Positions 550 to 15,294 of a stretch of DNA of 15,400 bases are shown here, one piece after another. Source of the stretch: Epithemia pelagica (Eukaryota > Protista > Bacillariophyta); the NCBI GenBank assembly GCA_946965045.2, contig CAMPTO020000001.1, forward strand, positions 1 through 15,400, written 5' to 3'. The translations under genes were made by a program, and so were the position numbers. The notes beneath the pieces were generated by a model. That model had not been told where the DNA came from, did no database searches, and saw only the letters and a list, made by a program, of their open reading frames with translations. Position 1 is the stretch's first letter. The number at the start of each line of letters is the position of its first letter.

Positions 550-1505
550 GATTTCTGGAACAAGTCGGTTTGGAAACTTGGTGAATGTGTAGGTCGTATT
601 TGCTCCAGCATGTGACCCACTTTCCCTTGTACCATCAAATACCAAAAGCTTCGACCGAAAATTTGCTGGGACCATTTTCACATGAATTGGAGGGCCATGC
701 AACAACCACTTCTCTCCAAAATCATAGAAAAACTTGAGTATGGGTTCGTTGACTTCATCTTCGCCGGTAGTGGTTGTCAGAGAAAGCAAATTTTCCATCC
801 GTTCTTGAAAGGTTGCTCCATCTGGCTTGGAAGAGTAGTGTTCCTCCTGAGCCAATGGATGAAACAAAGGAACAAAACAATCAACCATCTCCTCAGATAC
901 CATATGGAAAGTTTGGGTGACCGCTCTCTTTGTTTTCAAGATTGGATCCTCTTGGGAATATTTCATACTGACAGCAGTAATAGATACCAGCCTCCCACAA
1001 GAAGTGACCTGTAATTGTTCCCTCTCAGGCCCAATGGCTCCACAGGAGTTAGGTGAGGAGAGATGACACATATCATTGCTGAGTCTTGTCCAAGAACAGA
1101 CCTCCCCGTGAAGAAGTTTTTTGCGGTATGAGGGTCTTCTTGCAAAATTTGCTCAAGGGACTGCTTTCTTGCAACAAGGAGTCGGTTGTCAGTTGCTGAG
1201 ACACAGACTCCATGTTGATTTAGATGCCGCTGCATGGACCAAAGACTTTCTCCGAATGATTGCTTGCATATGCCCCATCCCATACCAAAGGGTGTCACAA
1301 TTGTAGCATCTAAACATGACAAGCCAATGCCCTGATCGGAACGGATCTTCTTCACAGGCCGTCTCCGGGATGGAGATGGCGTTCCAGGCCCATTGTTGGT
1401 AGCCATTGCTGGTTTGCTCGTGTGCATGGAACAGAGGAAGAGACATAACCAGCCGACTCTCAAGCAAAAGCAAGGATGGGCCTCTTTGCAAGAGTCATAA
1501 TTCAT
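550..1505 (-). pseudogene. A1: 5' fragment of a putative telomere-linked helicase-like gene (N-terminal Zn-finger region), frameshifted and truncated by the telomere
   Basis: ORF 963..1505 is shifted out of frame by a 28-bp deletion relative to A2. My translation of the downstream frame has no stop from ~1085 to the telomere: ...QVTSCGRLVSITAVSMKYSQEDPILKTKRAVTQTFHMVSEEMVDCFVPLFHPLAQEEHYSSKPDGATFQERMENLLSLTTTTGEDEVNEPILKFFYDFGEKWLLHGPPIHVKMVPANFRSKLLVFDGTRESGSHAGANTTYTFTKFPNRLVPEI|VRVR... The ORF track misses it because it never meets a stop. The helicase-family link is inference from similarity to B and co-location with fragment C. Confidence 0.75.
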
Positions 1506-1524
1506 GAAACAACAATGACCTTTT

Positions 1525-1593
1525 GTTGGGCCAATTGAGGTTTTCAGGTGAAGATGTTGGGCCTATTGAGGTTTTCAGGTGAAAATGTTGGGC
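1525..1593. repeat. 31-bp tandem repeat x2.2 just upstream of the A gene (also at 4950..5018)
   Basis: GTTGGGCCAATTGAGGTTTTCAGGTGAAGAT, GTTGGGCCTATTGAGGTTTTCAGGTGAAAAT, GTTGGGC. Confidence 0.9.
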
Positions 1594-1682
1594 GCGAAGG
1601 GGCACGCAGGCAAGCTTTTCGCGCCAAAGAATGGGGGAACAACTAAGAGTGCGGTAATGGTTAGTAATCAATGAAATTTAGG

Positions 1683-1900
1683 ACTCATATTGAATATGAG
1701 TGCTTAGAAATTAGACTTGAGCGGGGCATAGACATTCTGTGCTCATCTGCACAAGGGGCAGTGCTCTTTTGCAACAAAAGGCATATATATCAGTGCTCAT
1801 ATGCACAGATACTATAGCCCCTTGTGCTCATATGCACATGTTCAAATCCTACGGTGTCTAGTACTAAAGACACCCAAAAAAGGCAAATATCCTTAGGGGA
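1683..1900. repeat. Subterminal palindromic motif array and terminus of unit A
   Basis: ACTCATAT-TGA-ATATGAGT at 1683-1701. GTGCTCA(T/C)-type motif GTGCTCATCTGCAC at 1739 and GTGCTCATATGCAC at 1793 and 1824, with a degenerate copy at 1761. GTGTCT-AGTACTAA-AGACAC at ~1855-1874. Ends in CCTTAGGG(GA). Confidence 0.85.
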
Positions 1901-3037
1901 CTCACCGAGTTCTTGAGCGGCAACTCCACATGATTTCAACCTCAAGCCATTCTTCGTCTTAGTGAACAACCTCTGCCAAGAGAACAGTAACACTACCCCT
2001 GAGTCGGACCAACAATAAATCTCACTGTCGAGTACCAACTCTGTCAGGAGTGACCCAAGAACACAATTTTGGAATGCAGTGTCCACAGAGAATCCATCAC
2101 CTTCAACCTGGCAGCAAAAATAGTCCCATCTCTTCCACTGCCTCTGATGCAGGAAACACAAGAGAGAGAGGAGTAGAGGTTTCACTCGTTTGTCATAATC
2201 ATGTCGATGGCTGAAATTCCATGAGTGATCCACATCACCATCATGGAAAGCAAACTAAGCAATCGGACTCCGAATGTCTGCTGGAATCCCCATTACGATC
2301 GAAGTCATCCTGTCCAGAAGGTGACAACCAACCTGATAGAGTCGGTTGATTGCAGTGTTATTTCCTCTCTTATGATACTTGGCTTCAAACATAATTCCTT
2401 GTTCAATGTCTCCAAGGGTATTCTCCAACGTGCCAGGAATCATATTACTCAGTACATCGGGCCACCTTCCCAAAGTGTCGCTTGGATGCAATAATGGTTC
2501 AATCGAACTTGCAAACTCGTTGGGTAACCTGCTGCAGGGCAGCGGCATGGTGAATATTGAATTCTCAACTTGAATTATTGGGGTCCAGTTGGTTTCTTGC
2601 TGCATGGTTTCTCTTTGGGGCCTTGGCATGAAGCATCCTCACTTCAGCTTGAGGAAAGTCTTGGCAATGACTTTGGCACTAGCGCAACAACCAGCAACGT
2701 GCTTCTCGCACAAAAGCTTCACATGAAACATCTTGTCACAGTCACTACAGAAATACTTGATTCTTGTATCATTTGACTCATGAATGAAACAATCAAACGG
2801 TTGGTTGTTGGCATTCTCCACAAGAGTGTGTATTTTGTTACCAAGATGTCTCCCAGGAAAGCGAAAGGACACCCCATGAATTTTGGAGCAGGTCTTGGCG
2901 TGGGGGGCAAGACACTTCATGTTTGCTCGGAAACCACCACCACAGAGCTTACAGACCAAGCCACAGGGTGTGGCAAAGTCCACAAGCCCCAAGTAATCGT
3001 CAAACTCCATGGTGGCTGTTGTCATTCCTATGGTCAA
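1901..3037 (-). pseudogene. B: 5' fragment of a divergent paralog of the A gene, two in-frame stops, truncated at the unit A terminus
   Basis: ORFs 2639..3037, 2255..2629 and 1790..2233 are one frame joined across TGA (2641-2639) and TAG (2257-2255). It aligns by eye to A: TPCGLVCKLC vs KPFGMGCGIC; KLK*GCF vs VTSCGRL; IEPLLHP vs FVPLFHP; RLYQVGCHLL...IPADIRSPIA*F vs FFYDFGEKWLL...VPANFRSKLLVF. After ELGES (~1901) the ORF runs into non-coding unit A terminus. Confidence 0.8.
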
Positions 3038-3201
3038 AATAGGTTTGGGACGTATGACCCTTTGCAGCCAAAAAAGAGGCCCTAAAGAGGGTCATTCACC
3101 TCAAAAACTGAAAAGGCCCTAACACCAGAGATCATTCACCTCAAAATCTTTGAGCGACAAGAAGGAATATGGTTTACTATGGAGAGCTAATGTAGGTTTG
3201 C

Positions 3202-3368
3202 AAATCGACCTTCTTGTGGTGGAAATCGACCTTTTTGTGGTCGCACTAAAAGTTCGCACGCAACAATACAGTGATTCAAAATTGACCTTTTTGTGGTCGC
3301 GCATGTGATTCTACAGAATGAACTTAGTGCGCACGACAAAAAGGTCGATTTCTAGCAAAACCCTTAGG
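3202..3368. repeat. Subterminal repeats and terminus of unit B
   Basis: AAATCGACCTT(C/T)TTGTGGT(CGC) at 3202 and 3223, AAATTGACCTTTTTGTGGTCGC at 3279, and an inverted copy CACGACAAAAAGGTCGATTT at ~3332-3351. Followed by AAAACCCTTAGG (3357-3368). Confidence 0.85.
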
Positions 3369-3990
3369 TCTGTCAAGACGATTCGGATTGGAGGTGGATT
3401 GCTGTGGTGTGTGTGATTGGTGTGTTGAACAATCAAATCAAAGTGGACACTCCAGAGTCAGGGAGAGGGTCAGGAATGAAGACATTGATGCGGAAAAGGC
3501 TGAATCCTATCTGGCAAGGCTTACAAGAGAATGCATTGTGTGCAAGGAGGCAGGATGCAATGGTGAAAGCTGTCTGCCCTATGGAGCATGCTTCAACTGT
3601 GGTCAGCCAGGTCACCAGAGAGGACAGTGCCGAGTTGATTTCCGAACAGTCTTGAGCAACAAGGCCTGCTTTTACTGCTTTGATGTGTTCAGCAGGCGCG
3701 GCTACTAGCAACACCATCCCAGTGCATGTCCTTTACAATGAAGATTGAAGCGGCTGATGATCGATGTATATGAGTCAAGGAAGACCAATGGACAATCCAG
3801 AGCAATGACTGATTTCATGTCCGAAGTAACATGCGACAGCCATTTGTTTCATGCTTTTCTGTGTCAGAGTGTTGAACAACGGATGGGCATGACAGTGACA
3901 CAGACACCTCATGCAACCACAGCAGCCAGACCATCTGTGGCACGACCAGCTCTACCAAGGAATCCATATGCAAAGAAAGCATTCAAGTAG
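3367..3990 (+). pseudogene. C: 3' fragment of a RecQ-type helicase gene (RecQ Zn-binding motif, further Cys clusters, CCHC zinc knuckle), two in-frame stops
   Basis: One frame from the junction: GLSRRFGLEVDCCGVCDWC (resembles the RecQ Zn motif ...L..YFG...C..CDxC), then CIVC...C...C, CFNCGQPGHQRGQC (CX2CX4HX4C), CFYC, RRGY*QHHPSACPLQ*RLKRL...RNPYAKKAFK*. This joins ORFs 3388..3708 and 3745..3990. No ATG and no helicase motifs upstream; the frame starts at CCCTTAGG. Confidence 0.75.
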
Positions 3991-4191
3991 ATCGTATTAA
4001 GTTAGTAGTTACAATGTGTCGGGTTAAAGACCATCATCAAAAGACCCATAGAAGAGTCATCTCACAAAAAATCTAATCACGTCTCACAAAAAAATATTAG
4101 GCCCAAAGAAGGGTCATTTCACACAAAAATCTGACCCAGTCACACTTGAAGTGACGGGAACTGAAACTAGTCGAGCTAGGACTAACTAATT

Positions 4192-4314
4192 AAAAGGCAT
4201 ATATATCAGTGCTCATATGCACAGATACTATAGCCCCTTGTGCTCATATGCACACGTTCAAATCCTACGGTGTCTAGTACTAAAGACACCCAAAAAAGGC
4301 AAATATCCTTAGGG
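4192..4314. repeat. 123-bp partial third copy of the unit A terminus
   Basis: Matches 1776..1898 and 5202..5324 from AAAAGGCATATATATCAG to AAATATCCTTAGGG. Confidence 0.97.
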
Positions 4315-4930
4315 TGACCGCTCTCTTTGTTTTCAAGATTGGATCCTCTTGGGAATATTTCATACTGACAGCAGTCATAGATACCAGCCTCCCACAAGAA
4401 GTGACCTGCAATTGTTCCCTCTCAGGCCCAATGGCTCCACAGGAGTTAGGTGAGGAGAGATGACACATATCATTGCTGAGTCTTGTCCAGCCAACAAGAC
4501 ACCTGCAGGAATATCCAAGAACAGACCTCCCCGTGAAGAAGTTTTTTGCGGTACGAGGGTCTTCTTGCAAAATTTGCTCAAGGGACTGTTTTCTTGCAAC
4601 AAGGAGTCGGTTGTCAGTTGCTGAGACACAGACTCCATGTTGATTTAGATGCGGCTGCATGGACCAAAGACTTTCTCCGAATGATTGCTTGCATATGCCG
4701 CATCCCATACCAAAGGGTTTCACAATTGTAGCATCTAAACATGACAAGCCAATGCCCTGATCGGAACGGATCTTCTTCACAGGCCGTCTCCGGGATGGAG
4801 ATGGCATTCCAGGCCCATTGTTGGTAGCCATTGCTGGTTTGCTCGTGTGCATGGAACAGAGGAAGAGACATAACCAGCCGACTCTCAAGCAAAAGCAAGG
4901 ATGGGCCTCTTTGCAAGAGTCATAATTCAT
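4312..4930 (-). pseudogene. A2: 5' fragment of the A gene, frame intact but truncated after ~206 codons
   Basis: ORF 4280..4930 contains CGIC-x13-HLNQH, YSCRC...CH and CGR. After KRAVT the ORF leaves the A coding sequence (compare A1) and reads into the 123-bp terminus copy (LRIFAFFGCL*). Confidence 0.8.
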
Positions 4931-5326
4931 GAAACAACAATGACCTTTAGTTGGGCCAATTGAGGTTTTCAGGTGAAGATGTTGGGCCTATTGAGGTTTT
5001 CAGGTGAAGATGTTTGGCGCGAAGGGGCACGCAGGCGAGCTTTTCGCGCCAAAAGAGTGGGGGAACAACTAAGAGTGCGGTAATGGTTAGTAATCAATGA
5101 AATTTAGGACTCATATTGAATATGAGTGCTTAGAAATTAGACTTGAGCGGGGCATAGACATTCTGTGCTCATCTGCACAACGGGCAGTGCTCTTTTGCAA
5201 CAAAAGGCATATATATCAGTGCTCATATGCACAGATACTATAGCCCCTTGTGCTCATATGCACACGTTCAAATCCTACGGTGTCTAGTACTAAAGACACC
5301 CAAAAAAGGCAAATATCCTTAGGGGA
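4312..5326. repeat. Direct repeat unit A, copy 2 (1015 bp)
   Basis: Pairs with 915..1900 and carries the extra 28 bp CCAGCCAACAAGACACCTGCAGGAATAT. Confidence 0.97.
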
Positions 5327-5352
5327 TCAAGTCAAGAACCAACTTGACTTGA
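5327..5352. other. Perfect 10-bp inverted repeat at the boundary between mosaic and unique sequence
   Basis: TCAAGTCAAG-AACCAA-CTTGACTTGA begins on the first base after CCTTAGGGGA. Confidence 0.85.
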
Positions 5353-5994
5353 CGAGTGGCGAGACTGACTCTGATGCACCGCTGCTCCACCGATGATCGC
5401 GCCATAAATTTCTGCCCTTTATCAACTGCCAATCGATAGCCCCGAACTTATTCGTGCTGCCAACCAAAGACCAAGCGGCAATATCCGACGAGGAACGAGG
5501 AGACTGGACCTGTCACCGCAGCAGCATCATTGCAGGGTTTGTCATTTTCAATAATTTTCAATGTCACTGAATGTGCCGGATACAAAAGAAACTTTTTAGG
5601 AGGTGGTAGCAGGATTCACCAACTGCTCGTTTTGCTTGGCCAGTAGTTTCGGATGGAGCATCGGAATCTTGCGTCCCTGGAAGCCCTCTTCGATTCTCGT
5701 CAATGCCAAACTATCGGAATCGGTAAGAAGAGAGGGAAGGGTAACGAGATTGTTGTTGCGGTTTGCGGTGGTGGTAAGGTTATCGCTTGGTGGAAAATCT
5801 CTCCCAATGGGTTTGCACCAAGTCAAAGGAGTGCGTCATGGGTCCATCGGTCGCGTCAGGGCGACGGGCGAGGGTTCGGAATTCGGAAAGAGGAAAAAAG
5901 AACCCTGAATACAGGAGGCACTTCTCAAAGACGACACAAACCAACAAGCCACTAAAACTACGTGGATTGGCGGCAACGATTGCCATTCGTCTCC

Positions 5995-8900
5995 ATGGCG
6001 ACAGTGTCATCCTCCCCTTGTCCTCCTCATCAACAACGATTGATCATGACGACCCAAGGGAGATTGGACGAACATGACGATATTTACACTCTACTTCAAA
6101 AGAGAATTTCACAAAACAACCGGACCTTGCAAAAACAGACGGAATCGGTCCTTTATGCGGCAACTACTACGACTACTAACACCACACTGATGAATCACAA
6201 CATGAATTATACCGCTCCACACCATGCTGCATCGCGACATGCTGTGGATGGAGGATCAGCACCGGATCAAAGTCACAGCGTGGCGGGTAGCAGCAAATGT
6301 AGTAGTAAGAGCCGTGAGTTGGGGAGCTTGTGGTGGAGCAGTAACAAGAGCAGTGGTGTCGGTAGCAGTGTTTCCTCCATGACTTTTACCACGCACGATT
6401 CCCGGGCGCAGCAGCACCAGCAACGACAACGCGAGACGGCTCGGCGCATGGCACAAGCCTATCAAAAGGGACAAGAGCAAATGGCGCTCCGGCGCTGGAT
6501 GGCACAGAATACCAAACAACAAGGCTTGGCCACCCGGCGTGAATGGATGCAAAAATCTAGAGAATTGCAACAACAACAGCATCAGCGTATGGCGCAACAC
6601 CACCATTCAGAAGAACATGACGACAGCATTCGAGGACGACCAGGACAAGGAGGCGAGAGTGGCATCTCTGCGCTTTCGAATCGAAAAAGTCAATCCACCA
6701 ATACCACCACGGAACGACGACGGTCATTCCGCATGTCACGTCGCGGATCTACCGGAACCAGTCCTGCAGTCGCACAGTCCCCCAGTATCCAACCAGACAA
6801 CAATGCCAAGTCTTTTTCACCCTCATCTGTCATTGGAACACCCGCAATGGAGGCTGGCTCGGCATCATGGTTCCCTCATTTCAACCACAATCCCGATGGC
6901 AAACCCAACAACACTTTTGGGCAACCCGATGTTACTGTCATGTCAACCAGCAGCCAGAATGAGCACCACCAACAGGATGCTTCTTCTCTAGTATCACGAG
7001 CCACAAGAAAAATGACTCGACGGGGGTCGACTGGCAATTTACCACTTTCATCCCCTGGCACCATGGCCTCGTCGCCAAGCAATCTTTTTTTGTCAAATGT
7101 GCCAGCTCACTCCCAGCAGTCAAAGCACGATCCTGGTCATCATCATTATCCAGATTCTAATGACAACACTACGGAGTCCAGTAACACCTTGTTGTTAGAT
7201 CATATAGGTGGAGAAGAGCCAGCTGACATGGAAAGCGAGACAATGGTCCACGAGTCGGATTCTTCCAGCACTTCAGGGCTGTCAGATGAGCCGACTACCG
7301 TCCTAGGAAAAGATGCAACAACCATACCATTTATCCATCAGGACACAACCCCAGAACCTCCAACGCCTGGTTGTGCTGCTGCTACTACAGATGGTACAAT
7401 CAATCGCGACGATGAGACATTGCTAGAGATGTTGGCCACCCCATTGTCGTCCTCTTCCTTCCTGACAGACAAATGTAAAGAAACGGAAATGGAGCAAATA
7501 ACCCAGCATTCGTCCAAAGAGTCCCAAGCATAGCCACTGGTGGTTGGAAGTGTGTTTGTGGACGACGATCAAGATGAGTTTTATGATTGCTTGTCCGTCA
7601 TTCTGGAAGAGCAAGAACAAGAACCTTGTTCCAGTGACAATGAAGACACTTCTGAGATGGACCATGTGAGTTTGGTACGAGCCATGGAGGCTGGAGATTC
7701 ACCAGTGCTGCTGCCATTGACACTTGTAATGTCCCAAGGTCGAGAAAAAGACGATGGCAGCACAAAAAATCATTCAACGAGTTTTCAGGAAAAAGAACCA
7801 CTTGCAACCTCTCGCGAGGAGTTCGCCGATCCAAAGTGGACCGAATCACCCAAGTCAAACAACACGCTTAAGGACACCAATTTGCAATGCCGACATCACC
7901 AACCACCGCCACTAGCACCCGCCAAAGGGTACGGACAAGTTGCTGTTGTTCCAACGGAGCATCCCAGTGACACAGTGCCCCATTGTGGGACGGAAATCTC
8001 GGGCCCCACCAGATTGCTGAATGACTCCACAAATTTCCCACAACAATTCAACTCGGACCATCCCACAATTGGGAATTCATCGAACCGCAGCCGACAGCAT
8101 CATCTAGATCATGTCGACTCACAGCAGCAACAAGACGATGAATCCAGCAGTGCATGCAAGGATGACACTGGACAGGGTACTTGTGGTCCGATTCTAGCTG
8201 GTAGCCATGATGACTGTGACAAGAAAGACAAAGAACGCAACTCGGAGACGTCCAATGACAACGAACAAGGGGCGTTTGTGGGCCGTCGAAACATGGATCA
8301 TGCGCCTCCAACAAAACCAAACGAGCCATCACCGCCTTTGGGCATACAATCCAAGGAGGAAAGAAGTGCAATAGGTCCACCAGAAGACAAGAAGCATGAT
8401 GAGGAGAAGGAGTACCCGACCGCTGTGTCGGACAAGACTCCCCTCGAAGGAACTGTTGTTCCTCACAAACTAGTGAAATCAGTGACCAGAACCCCTCGTC
8501 TCCAGCGACGCCGCTCCATGGGATCCTCCGTATCTCTAGCTTCCATGGATTCCCAGAAAAATTCTCTTTTCCAAGAAAATATGTCATTGCCATCGTCTTC
8601 ATCTCGAATGGCCGCCAATTATCGACTCTCCGTCGCCAAGCCAACGCATTGCTACGCCAACACGAATTGGTACACCGTCAGGCATGGGCCACCCAAGCGA
8701 GACGACAAAAAATGCCCGAAGACCAAGGGTCCATTCGGAGCATGCCGTCCGTGTCAGTCAGGAGGGGAACCTCGTGCCTGTGCACGCTACGGTTGGTAGA
8801 GATGACAAGGCTCGTGAATTATTGTCACCAAGGCGGTCCTTTGCATTACAACCTCCTGTTGGTCCATTGCAAGAGCCAGAACAGTTGCCTTCAAGTCCAG

Positions 8901-9907: not shown

Positions 9908-10110
9908 ATGCCCAAAGAGGAGATTGGCCAGTGGCATTGGCATGACATGACGTGGAGTAACTCCACGACGGAAAGCCAGTCGTATTAGATCCCAAATCCT
10001 TGTTTCCTGGAGCTTGTGAGGATTGCCTATATCCTCCGGTAACTTGGATTGTTTTATATTTTAGATAGAGTCCATACAGTTCTGGCTAAAGGGTTCATGT
10101 AACCTTAGTA

Positions 10111-10703
10111 AGGGCTGGGTAAGCCGATCCATGTTCGGCTAAGTAGGCTCAGTACATTAAGCTACGTAGTACTATTTTCATCACTGTAACAAGTGGGGCG
10201 AATGGTCACAAATCGAAAACTTGCTGCCACGAGAAACAATGCAATCCGGAAACCATCACTCGACAATGGTCGAAGAAATCACCCCCATGGCAATAACTTC
10301 ATGGATAATTGAGCCTGCTTGAATCACTTTTAGAATAATACTCTTGAATACTAGAGCAACTATGGTTTCAATTTGATTCAGTCACCGTTGAGAAATGAAT
10401 GAGTTAGGAAGGTTTTTGATTACATCACCAGTATACCTTTTGATCCAACGCGACAAATCTTCTGTAGCTGCAGAACACAGTAATACTAGCAAACTCAAAC
10501 AACTTACAGTAGTAGGATGTTGATGCGATGCATCGGTAAATGCATGCGGCATCAACGGATCTCGCCGTCATCGTGCAGTGTTTTTGCATTTTTTCGGACT
10601 TCCCACCATTTCAGGTATGACGTGTACTATGGGATTTTATGTACCCTACGTAGCTTTGGTACTGAACCTACTTAGCCGAACATGGATCGGCTTACCCAGC
10701 CCT
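10111..10703. mobile_element. MITE / non-autonomous DNA transposon, 593 bp, ~59-bp TIRs, TA target-site duplication
   Basis: Left TIR 10111..10169 and right TIR 10646..10703. The first 37 bp are perfectly inverted (AGGGCTGGGTAAGCCGATCCATGTTCGGCTAAGTAGG). TA lies at 10109-10110 and 10704-10705. AT-richer interior with no ORF in the track. Superfamily not assignable from this alone. Confidence 0.9.
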
Positions 10704-11262
10704 TAGCACTAGGAATTTACACACCTCTCGCGCTTGCTCCATCCCCCGAATGGATAGCCCCCCGAATGGCTAGAGTGGGGGTGGAAACCGGATTTTTTCG
10801 TTGGGGGCGGTCCAGACTTTCCTGTCTTTCGTTTGGGGGCATCCCCCCAAGCATTCGTCTTGGGCCTTCCCCCATTCTCTTAGTACTTTGTTCGCCATAC
10901 TACTTATCAACTGCAGTTTGCAGTTGCCGCAGCGAATGCATTCTCTCCGTGGTTGGGCCTTTTTCTCTCATCCCCCACAACGGCTGTCCGTGGCGCAGAC
11001 AAAACAACCAAATGGTTTTGGTAGTACTGTTTGGCTCTGTAGAGAAAGAGGGTTACCATCAATGTGAGATCGACGAAAATTGCGAACTGAAAATCTCCAT
11101 CACCGTTCAGCCACCCTCACAGATCCAACCATTGCAACTACCGACTTCTCGTTTGACACTTGTCGCACTCTACGAGAGAAAGAGACGTTGCAAAAGACTT
11201 GGCGTGTCTTTGAGAAACGACACAGCGAAGAAGAAGAACCGAGAAGCAAGAAGCAAGAGACC

Positions 11263-12979: not shown

Positions 12980-13825
12980 TCATGGAGAGTCTCGAAACAA
13001 CAGAGTCATGCGGGTACTCGGAACCGTCGTCCATGTCTCTCTACTCTATTTTATATTTGTAACTGAATTGAACCCTGGGGAAATACTAGTATAGGAACGA
13101 ATTATTTGTTCTTCTTTAATGGTCTGCCGAACGACTCCATCAAGAGTCGAACGAGGCAACGAGTCCAGTTGCATGTTTTGGAACGAACATGTAGGCTTAT
13201 TCCAACAGGACGGGAACGTGCCAAGGAAAACGTCGTGCCGGAACAACAACCAGGCACCTCAGCAGATCGTGTTTGGTATTTGTCCATTCCAAATGGACCA
13301 GAGTCAGCCCTTCTGGTCCGAGGAAATTTGGATAGATGATACATGTCTTCGAATAGTTTCGTAGGCCATTGGTTCTTTGGGTTGGACTATACCGAGAAGG
13401 TTAATCCAGCCCAACTGGACGGTTCCAGTCGCCAGAGAACACGATTCTTCTCCAATCTCCAAACGCGTTCTCACAGACCAAACGAAAAAGTACCATGCCA
13501 TCCAGAGGTGCGAGGGGTGAGAAAGTCCCTCCAGCCAGTCGTTCGGAATCATCCTCCTGCAGGTTGTCCATACCTTTGCTAGCTAGAGGTATAGGGGGAG
13601 TACTTGCTTTCTCGAGTGGTGGAGACAAGAAACATACAAGTTATTACAACAGCTATTAAAATCCTATGAATCACTCTTTGTGTATAATGTACTGTATGCA
13701 GAAGAAAATGTGTGGAGAAACTTCATTCCACGCCCTTTTTTTTGTGTGCAGAGGTATACAGGGGTCCGAACGTTTGGTTCCAAACAAGACAAGAGACGCT
13801 TCGGGAGGAGAAACGTACCGATCCT

Positions 13826-13884: not shown

Positions 13885-14745
13885 TTAGTTGGTCATGGCT
13901 TGTTCTTCCTCCTCATGAGGATTCCGTTGCAACAACCAGGACCAGGCATTGCTCGCAAAGGAAGTGGTTGTTGTCGTTGGCTCATCTGGTTGGTCTTCCT
14001 CCTCCTCTTCCACAACGTCGTCATAGTGTTGCAACACAAAGGGACGCGAGGCGGCCGTTTGCGGGGGATGCAACTCGTCCAAGACGTGTTGTCCCGTCAG
14101 AGATTCGAACCGCTTGGGCATGGGCAAAGTAGTGGTAAAGAGAGTGGGCACATCGTGCCAATGCCAATGGCCCGTGGTAAATTCCTGCGCCAATCGTGTC
14201 GAGACATGTTCCAACTGTTCTCGCGTCGAATGGGTGCCATTGTGCGCGAGGCACCACCACCAGAGCAAGGCCACCAAGCCGCCCGTGGTGGCCAACAGTG
14301 TCACGAATCCCCACCACGACGATTGTTCGGCGGCAATCATTAAATCATCGAAAAAGGAACTGGGTTCGCGTCGCAACGGAGTTGTTGTCTTGGTGGTGGT
14401 TGGCTGGTCGGTCTTGTTGTTCTTGGTTGTTGGTTCGTCCAACACAATGTCATCGTCAGGTGTCACAATCCCAAAAATCATGGTCTTGTTGTGATCGTTG
14501 TTGTCGTTGGTTCAAGAAAGGGTCCGTTTGTAGGAGTTGAACGTTGTGTTTGTTCTTCTAAAAGTTTGTTTGTAGTATGCGATTGTGGGAACAAGGAATG
14601 GATCGTTCGACCCTTGCCTTGCGCCTCGAGACGAACCATCTGCTGCTGGTGGTTGGTTCTCATTCTTTCGTTTCTCCTCCTCCTCGTAGTAGTCTATTGT
14701 AGAGAGTGTGACAATGGTTCTCGTTTCATCCAGGTGCATCATCAT
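13885..14745 (-). pseudogene. Hypothetical single-pass membrane protein with one in-frame TGA (14514-14512); alternatively an intact 198-aa CDS from ATG 14481
   Basis: ORFs 14512..14745 and 13885..14481 share a frame: ...KRTLS*TNDNNDHNKTMIFG... Hydrophobic segment WWGFVTLLATTGGLVALLWWWCL and an acidic T-rich tail. Confidence 0.6.
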
Positions 14746-15294
14746 GGATCATGCTTCTCTTGTTCCTCGTCAACACAACGATCGATATGGTCGGTCCTGA
14801 CACCTTGGTTCGCTTCCACCGATCCACAGACTTTCTGCCTTGTTTTAGAGAACCCAGATTCGCCGGGGGGGGGGGGATTTGGGGGAGAGAGTTCGATGAA
14901 CGATCCGGCCCAACGCGAAACATAATATGTGACGCATGCCCACGTGGCATTCGGAAGGCGCGCGGGAATTAAGGCAAGTAAGAACGCACGCCGGCTTATT
15001 CTGATTCGCACGCCTTCTCCACATGCGCGCGCCAAACACTCCCCTCTTTGGCGACGCTGCGATTGGCGACGACTTGTTGCCGCCAAAAAGCATTCTCAGC
15101 CCCCAAACTCAAACTGACTCGGCCATCCATTCAATCTCCTTGTTACGCACCTTTCATTTCGCGCTCGTTCCAGAGATTCCGCCAAGTTCCATACATTGCT
15201 TGAGATTGCTTGAGATTGGTGTCTCTCTTCTGGAACGACCACGATCGAGAATCTGTATCCTCTTGAATTTGCCATCAAGTCCAATCGTCCATCT

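Follow-up and report, generated by a model that had tools for sequence, protein, structure and literature searches.

The 15,400-nucleotide (nt) stretch of DNA analyzed in this study (referred to as the window) comprises positions 1 to 15,400 of contig CAMPTO020000001.1 of the diatom Epithemia pelagica. Positions 1 to 549 form a telomere tract, (CCCTAA)n on the plus strand, i.e., TTAGGG toward the end on the minus strand, as read directly from the sequence (GC skew, -1.0). The segment from 550 to 5325, which adjoins this tract, very probably consists of four truncated units of an element bearing genes of the telomere-linked helicase (TLH) type, stacked between unique DNA and the telomere. On the minus strand, read toward the chromosome end, each unit opens with CC(C)TAAGG, at 5323, 4313, 3368, and 1897, and the four CCTAAGG sites of the window all fall on this strand, at the unit boundaries. 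The original prediction described three divergent members of a telomere-linked RecQ-like family, here called A, B, and C, all missing the motor core. These three are real, but the number of fragments is four, because A is present twice (A1 and A2, approximately 96-98% identical).

The innermost unit consists of an A-type head and leader (4832 to 5325, minus strand; repeat family D2), followed by A2, the N-terminal stump of an A-type gene of approximately 172 codons (4312 to 4831, minus strand; recognized from the open reading frame [ORF] at 4280-4930), which starts at an ATG near 4831 and is cut at 4312-4314. The A2 head is joined at CCCC to unique chromosomal DNA starting at approximately 5326; beyond 5330, only low-complexity Ser/Thr/Gln-rich ORFs without a Pfam match are present, i.e., ordinary unique DNA. 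The second unit, X, begins with a 123-nt A-type head module (4192 to 4314, minus strand; repeat family D3), followed not by the A leader but, in antisense, by the 3' trailer (3991 to 4191, plus strand) and the last 207 codons (3367 to 3990, plus strand) of a family member, C, which was assigned by hhalign and phmmer and is oriented opposite to A and B; sequencing-run contigs of the organism leave the window sequence after 4190. The third unit comprises the B head and leader (3026 to 3368, minus strand; defined by head alignment) and B, the N-terminal stump of a very divergent member (1896 to 3025, minus strand); it begins with CCTAAGGGTTTTGC, of which 3366-3368 overlap native C bases. The outermost unit has an A-type head and leader (1407 to 1898, minus strand; repeat families D2 and D3 and head alignment), beginning with CCCTAAGGATATTT in the minus orientation and overlapping native B-stump bases at 1896-1898. 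It continues with the A-type stump A1 (550 to 1406, minus strand; traced from its reading frames), whose likely start codon, ATG 1406-1404, was assigned by comparison with copies at another chromosome end (L001, described below) and whose frame is open into the telomere at 549/550.

The two A-type stretches (912-1900 and 4309-5326) are 95.6% identical overall, with the gap of 28 nt counted, and 98-99% identical in ungapped blocks. The 123-nt module occurs in three copies (1776-1898, 4192-4314, and 5202-5324), and the copy at 4192 is 99-100% identical to the others. In the A-type leader, the palindrome GTGCTCATATGCAC occurs three to four times (1700-1860, 4200-4260, and 5120-5290), and the B leader contains AAATCGACCTTTTTGTGGT repeats in both orientations; located near the heads, these palindromes and repeats are candidate protein-binding sites. 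A 38-nt stretch of the C trailer is 74% similar to the B leader.

The motifs P.G..CxxC-x13-H, a second Cys/His cluster, PL(F/L)HP, and PA.(F/I)RS are common to A and B, as previously noted, except that the CGR ascribed to both is CSR in B. Two Cys/His clusters are found in each of A2 and B. No nucleotide similarity between A and B was found, in agreement with the first description, and the relationship is barely detectable by pairwise BLASTP (best E = 0.013, finger only). Pairwise BLASTP was discarded, as it was not significant for A against B or for B against a third element type. A profile built only from long helicase-bearing relatives was run on 318 six-frame pieces of the window. It gave colinear matches to A1 (E = 6e-24), A2 (9e-15), and the B pieces B3 (1.6e-7), B1 (6e-4), and B2 (0.03), and no other piece of the 318 matched. 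The matches span profile positions 87-266 in A1 and 9-138 in A2. Reading B as one frame, with X in place of both stops, yields a single alignment to positions 9-344 of this profile (68.7 bits; E = 7e-21), and the best of 500 shuffled controls scored 3.6 bits. The relationship proposed for the A and B modules is confirmed by these profile matches.

A2 has an intact frame and keeps both fingers; it is cut at the native GGG of 4312-4314 by the head of unit X, and A1 shows the native continuation past this point. Relative to A2, A1 has a 28-nt deletion at 1091/1092, which causes a frameshift and eliminates the second finger. B retains two C2H2-type fingers, followed by the larger part of the first (core-binding-like) half of a recombinase-like region. 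Its two in-frame stops, TGA 2641-2639 and TAG 2257-2255, are sense codons in the contigs of three sequencing runs of the organism (X1-X3), in which 2639 T>A gives TGT and 2257 A>T gives AAG. The A1 head interrupts B at 1896-1899; the X1-X3 contigs depart from the window at 1896, and in them the B frame runs on past this position. The end of A1 falls in the first (core-binding-like) lobe of the recombinase-like region and that of B near the close of this lobe, and the catalytic lobe is reached by neither; what remains of the gene in A1, A2, and B is limited to the fingers and a portion of the first lobe. It might be supposed that A2 or B works as a short zinc-finger protein, such as an element-derived regulator, given the intact 216-codon ORF of A2 with both fingers. 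This is highly improbable, however, in view of the translated head sequence in which the A2 ORF ends, the nonsense codons of B, and the frameshift of A1.

C spans the RecQ zinc motif, Cys-rich CCHC-type knuckles, and the natural stop, and its 5' end is cut at the B head. The zf-CCHC match of C (E = 2e-4) is the only Pfam match among all ORFs of the window. Alignment of C to the zinc-motif and knuckle region of the family with hhalign gives a probability of 99.85 and E = 8e-31 over 111 columns (429-539 of 544), and the last three Cys of the RecQ 4-Cys motif are retained. A phmmer search with C found 33 long relatives, matched 60-170 aa before their ends. The in-frame stops of C at 3706-3708 and 3739-3741 are sense codons in the run contigs (3706 T>A gives AAG, and 3739 T>C gives CGA); therefore, the two pieces C1 and C2 are one ORF and not two exons. 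The same contigs extend the gene upstream as ...CRVQG-LSRRFG. The RecQ-type zinc motif and the CCHC knuckle originally assigned to C are both present, whereas the terminal RNPYAK was rejected as a family signature because NPY occurs in only 2 of 51 tails; the conserved tail motif of the family corresponds to the F..S.(I/V).CD..F.AF(L/I) stretch of C2. Every fragment in the window is decayed: in addition to the truncation of all of them, A1 carries the frameshift deletion, and two nonsense mutations specific to the copy are found in each of B and C. All copies in the window are dead.

The architecture of the intact gene was deduced from relatives. A word search with A found one other copy only, which led to L001, the terminal 18 kb of an ENA contig 521 kb in length, where stumps are again stacked and a 494-codon A-like ORF is present. 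An exhaustive search with this ORF identified 131 related proteins. A DEAD/Helicase_C core is located downstream of the A-like module in all 38 relatives of at least 1,100 aa, and 33 proteins contain the N-terminal module, the helicase, and the C-like tail in one ORF, always in that order. As these relatives show, the intact gene encodes one protein of 1,200-1,850 aa. Its two C2H2 fingers are followed by a tyrosine-recombinase-like region with two lobes and then by a superfamily 2 (SF2) helicase of the RecQ type; this helicase includes the RecQ 4-Cys zinc motif and precedes a tail of Cys-rich knuckles. The finger assignment agrees with the match of the family N-terminal profile to solved C2H2 fingers (E = 7e-6). 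The 33 intact relatives thus combine, in a fixed order, an A/B-like N terminus, a DExH core whose nearest match is RecQ, and a C-like end, and together with the family profiles they support the proposal that A, B, and C are the two ends of long proteins of one family. At L002, a second ORF (5013-6083) with a WDGR..RHCTS motif follows the helicase gene; the same motif is found as a fused C-terminal extension in the 1,560- to 1,610-aa members P0033, P0054, P0063, and P0079.

The helicase profile of the family matches RECQ5 (E = 1e-21) and BLM (9e-17) best in the PDB, followed by RECQ1, E. coli RecQ (9e-15), and eIF4A (6e-14), and the matches to the RecQ group span the core and the zinc region. 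The helicase motifs GxGKS, DExH, and Q..GR.R and the 4-Cys zinc subdomain are shared with these RecQ helicases. In the zinc subdomain, the motif GCR...LS..FG.....C.VCD.C is conserved, and C423, C439, C442, and C445 are invariant; Pfam RecQ_Zn_bind is matched in only 2 of 25 members (E = 2.4e-4). In contrast to the RecQ helicases, the family has an N-terminal extension of approximately 750 aa, and neither the RQC winged helix nor the HRDC domain has a Pfam match in 25 members, in which CCHC-type knuckles follow the zinc motif instead. When the helicase region of the relative P0007 was compared with the PDB as a single sequence, only weak matches to MDA5 and DHX58 were obtained, and RecQ was found via the family profile. 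Because the single sequence misses RecQ and neither RQC nor HRDC was found, "RecQ-like" is the appropriate wording, although several members are annotated by JGI as "superfamily II DNA helicase RecQ." As the original prediction stated for the motor core, no window piece matches the helicase core, nor does any match the recombinase-like catalytic part, when the family profiles are run on the six-frame pieces.

A conserved region of approximately 440 aa lies between the fingers and the helicase in the relatives. R503, K530, R602, and H634 do not vary among 28 diverged sequences, and conservation at Y643 is at least 90%; the boxes holding this R/K/R/H/Y set (GGGS.R..E, SIK, QVRH.W, and GHS..TH...Y) read like those of tyrosine recombinases. 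The fold was assessed on an AlphaFold (AF2) model of P0007 (residues 90-800; mean predicted local distance difference test [pLDDT] score, 85), not on the window fragments. VIA-align matches, which cover model residues 197-635, include Cre (Z = 9.6, 241 aligned residues), XerH (9.1), XerD (7.5), topoisomerase IB (7.2), and Flp (6.3); the top 42 rows all belong to the tyrosine recombinase/topoisomerase IB superfamily, and unrelated rows have Z-scores of 4.3 or less. The catalytic lobe alone superposes with a root mean square deviation of 3.1-3.5 Å over 128-146 residues (Z = 8-9), and an ESM Atlas shape search returned Phage_integrase clusters. By sequence, the N-terminal profile matched zinc fingers only, and no recombinases, in the PDB. 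The model gives good support to a two-lobed recombinase fold, with a core-binding and a catalytic domain, and catalytic competence is plausible.

Each fragment in the window ends at the CC(C)TAAGG head of the next unit or at the telomere, and the cores were therefore lost by terminal truncation, not within each gene. The absence of the core from every fragment is also what would be expected if A, B, and C were three separate members, each with an internal deletion of the helicase core; however, these fragments end exactly at a unit head or the telomere, and the run contigs carry B and C in frame past their cut points, which leaves such deletions with very little credibility. The native sequence at four cut points is CC(C)(T), as known from A1 for A2, from the run contigs for B and C, and from the A-type stumps of L001. 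At least 15 joints in L001 and in L003, a locus from an ENA assembly in which near-identical copies of the window units are also found, carry the same heads. Six head types were recognized, with strongly diverged leaders and proteins, and only CC(C)TAAGG is common to them. A terminal-inverted-repeat model for the antisense position of C was considered but found no support: no inverted repeats are present in L002 or in the Fistulifera telomeric locus described below, and the run contigs part from the window at 4190.

At the end of L003, TTAGGG repeats truncate a copy of B after 14 codons, such that the B head, the leader, and the first 14 codons, 97.9% identical to the window, stand directly at the telomere. 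Just before this telomere (13986-14821), a 371-nt block composed of a 93-nt D-type head and a 278-nt B head/leader is tandemly duplicated, and even leader sequences in L003 are cut at native CCCT by the next head. At L003 656-5767 and L001 2180-4945, a Copia-type (RVT_2) polyprotein ORF is located a few kilobases inside one stack, and weak matches to an Ulp1 protease and an integrase core are located inside the other. Since chromosome-end sequences are repetitive, a chimeric assembly of the window might be suspected, all the more because no listed short-read contig bridges a joint. Against this, the same type of joint is found at two other ends, in the long ENA contigs of L001 and L003, all window segments are present in the three runs at 95-100% identity, and the joints are base-precise; we consider an assembly artifact the least probable of the explanations.

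A chromosome-end location, as originally proposed, holds for the window, for L003, and for a relative in another diatom. Fistulifera solaris GAX27885.1 (FisN_13Hu001), an intact protein of 1,457 aa, is encoded by the last gene of an 850-kb scaffold (L004), which reads toward TTAGGG repeats 2.3 kb away. One relative (L005) is located internally in its 99-kb contig. Approximately 770 nt downstream of this intact internal gene, at 13340-13400, a short degenerate TTAGGG run meets CCCTAA head-to-head (GGGTTAACCC), and this telomere-repeat palindrome could have been left behind by a former chromosome end or by the fusion of ends.

In the TLH proteins published for fungi and Monosiga, two C2H2 motifs stand at the N terminus, with the patterns Cx2-3Cx8-14Hx3-5H and then Cx2-5Cx11-16Hx4-5H; a TLH domain of approximately 250 aa immediately precedes the helicase, and RecQ motifs are present. 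Their genes are the last before telomeres, and some have extra Cys/His motifs near the C terminus. The diatom-type family has the same layout, and the slot of the TLH domain is that of the recombinase-like catalytic lobe, a part that the window fragments lack. The two differ in host range, TLH being known from fungi and Monosiga and the window family being from a stramenopile, and the second Cys/His cluster of A has a spacing slightly off the published pattern. Among the ESM Atlas look-alikes of the N-terminal 830 aa of the Fistulifera protein are Ascomycota OrsD clusters, one of which combines OrsD with DEAD, and the third element type in L001 also has an OrsD match (E = 3e-5). When word searches for named fungal TLH were run with the Fistulifera protein or the N-terminal alignment of the family, only close relatives appeared among the matches listed. 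Homology to the published TLH is likely by analogy of architecture, and "analogous," the term used in the original prediction for the relationship to fungal telomere-linked RecQ genes, is probably too weak. A search of a literature collection found no paper linking TLH to a recombinase, describing head-first stacking, or reporting a diatom TLH.

The stack was probably built from the inside outward. The CC(C)TAAGG head of each unit is joined to CC(C)(T) inside the preceding unit. Each head-first joining would have replaced everything distal to it, and the outermost stump, A1, would have been capped by telomere addition inside its ORF. The joints may have been made by the recombinase-like domain of the element or by the host, through microhomology-mediated repair or replication that exploits the telomere-like head. 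As a tentative extension, the TLH-type genes may be the cargo of a DNA-based, self-propagating chromosome-end element, whose recombinase-like domain, assisted by the RecQ helicase, would attach the head (a telomere unit in inverted orientation) at CC(C)T sites close to an eroded end.

This proposal has partial parallels in known elements. Cryptons, DIRS elements, and the Starship "Captain" (DUF3435) likewise have a recombinase-type fold with the R/K/R/H/Y set in the element's own protein and a short identity shared by the element terminus and its target, as at the window joints, and DUF3435 clusters are weak look-alikes in the ESM Atlas (0.79-0.81). These elements are without a helicase, are not end-specific, and insert whole, whereas the window units are terminally truncated and stacked. 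The telomere-specific retroelements, i.e., HeT-A/TART of Drosophila, Zepp of Chlorella, and SART/TRAS of Bombyx, are based on reverse transcription and have poly(A) joints; they form one-directional stacks of truncated copies at chromosome ends, in which erosion is followed by new additions. The window resembles them in its one-directional truncated stacking but differs in having no reverse transcriptase and in joining through a fixed DNA head. The Y' elements of Saccharomyces cerevisiae are subtelomeric repeated elements encoding a helicase (Y'-Help1), which is of a different lineage and, unlike the window family, lacks a zinc-finger or recombinase-like part.

Several observations weigh against parts of this interpretation. 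With the joints unbridged in the runs, the order of the units rests on the assembly; unit X, in which an antisense gene end comes after an A-type head, is not predicted by a simple head-first model; and the internal position of the L005 relative departs from telomere linkage. In the recombinase-like region, conservation is lacking at the first His of the HxxR box, which would precede the second Arg by three residues, Foldseek alone gave no match at E ≤ 0.001 (top rows, Cre with E = 0.04 and XerH), and activity is a prediction only. The proposed homology to TLH, for its part, is drawn from shared architecture and the ESM Atlas look-alikes. It is possible, at odds well short of even, that the family is an ordinary host subtelomeric gene family, copied by homologous recombination or break-induced replication, with stumps arising from erosion and repair and with no part played by the recombinase-like domain in the joints. 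Recombination exchange is common among subtelomeres, the microhomology at the joints is only 2-4 nt, as in microhomology-mediated repair, and one box of the putative catalytic set, HxxR, is incomplete. Homology-driven exchange does not, however, predict that six diverged head types keep CC(C)TAAGG and that every joint occurs at exactly that terminus, and the conservation of R, K, R, H, and Y across the 28 diverged sequences also argues against such a family.

Two further observations concern the window and its source. An insertion of approximately 600 bp at 10109-10705, located in an AT-richer stretch and flanked by 47-nt inverted repeats (98% complementary), looks like a non-autonomous transposon of the miniature inverted-repeat transposable element (MITE) type. 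In biofilm metagenomes (runs X4-X7, from a 2025 study), parts of 560-5330 were found at 95-99% identity, which implies that the organism or a close relative lives in biofilms; a metagenome contig with an A copy continues the gene past the 4312 cut point.

To our knowledge, TLH genes have been recognized at fungal chromosome ends for over two decades with their function and mode of spread unexplained. The window adds stramenopile members to the TLH-type genes. In the relatives, sequence conservation and the structural model point to a recombinase fold and residue set between the fingers and the helicase, including the slot of the fungal TLH domain, and the stacks show copies piling up through one base-precise head. 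The window fragments themselves are only fossils; they would register at least four end replacements in succession and a single de novo addition of a telomere. The question of why helicases are located at telomeres becomes testable, as one can ask whether the protein cuts and joins the head sequence. If the proposed self-propagating element is correct, head joining would re-cap the chromosome and would account for the spread of TLH genes among diatom chromosome ends and, by extension, among those of fungi and choanoflagellates.

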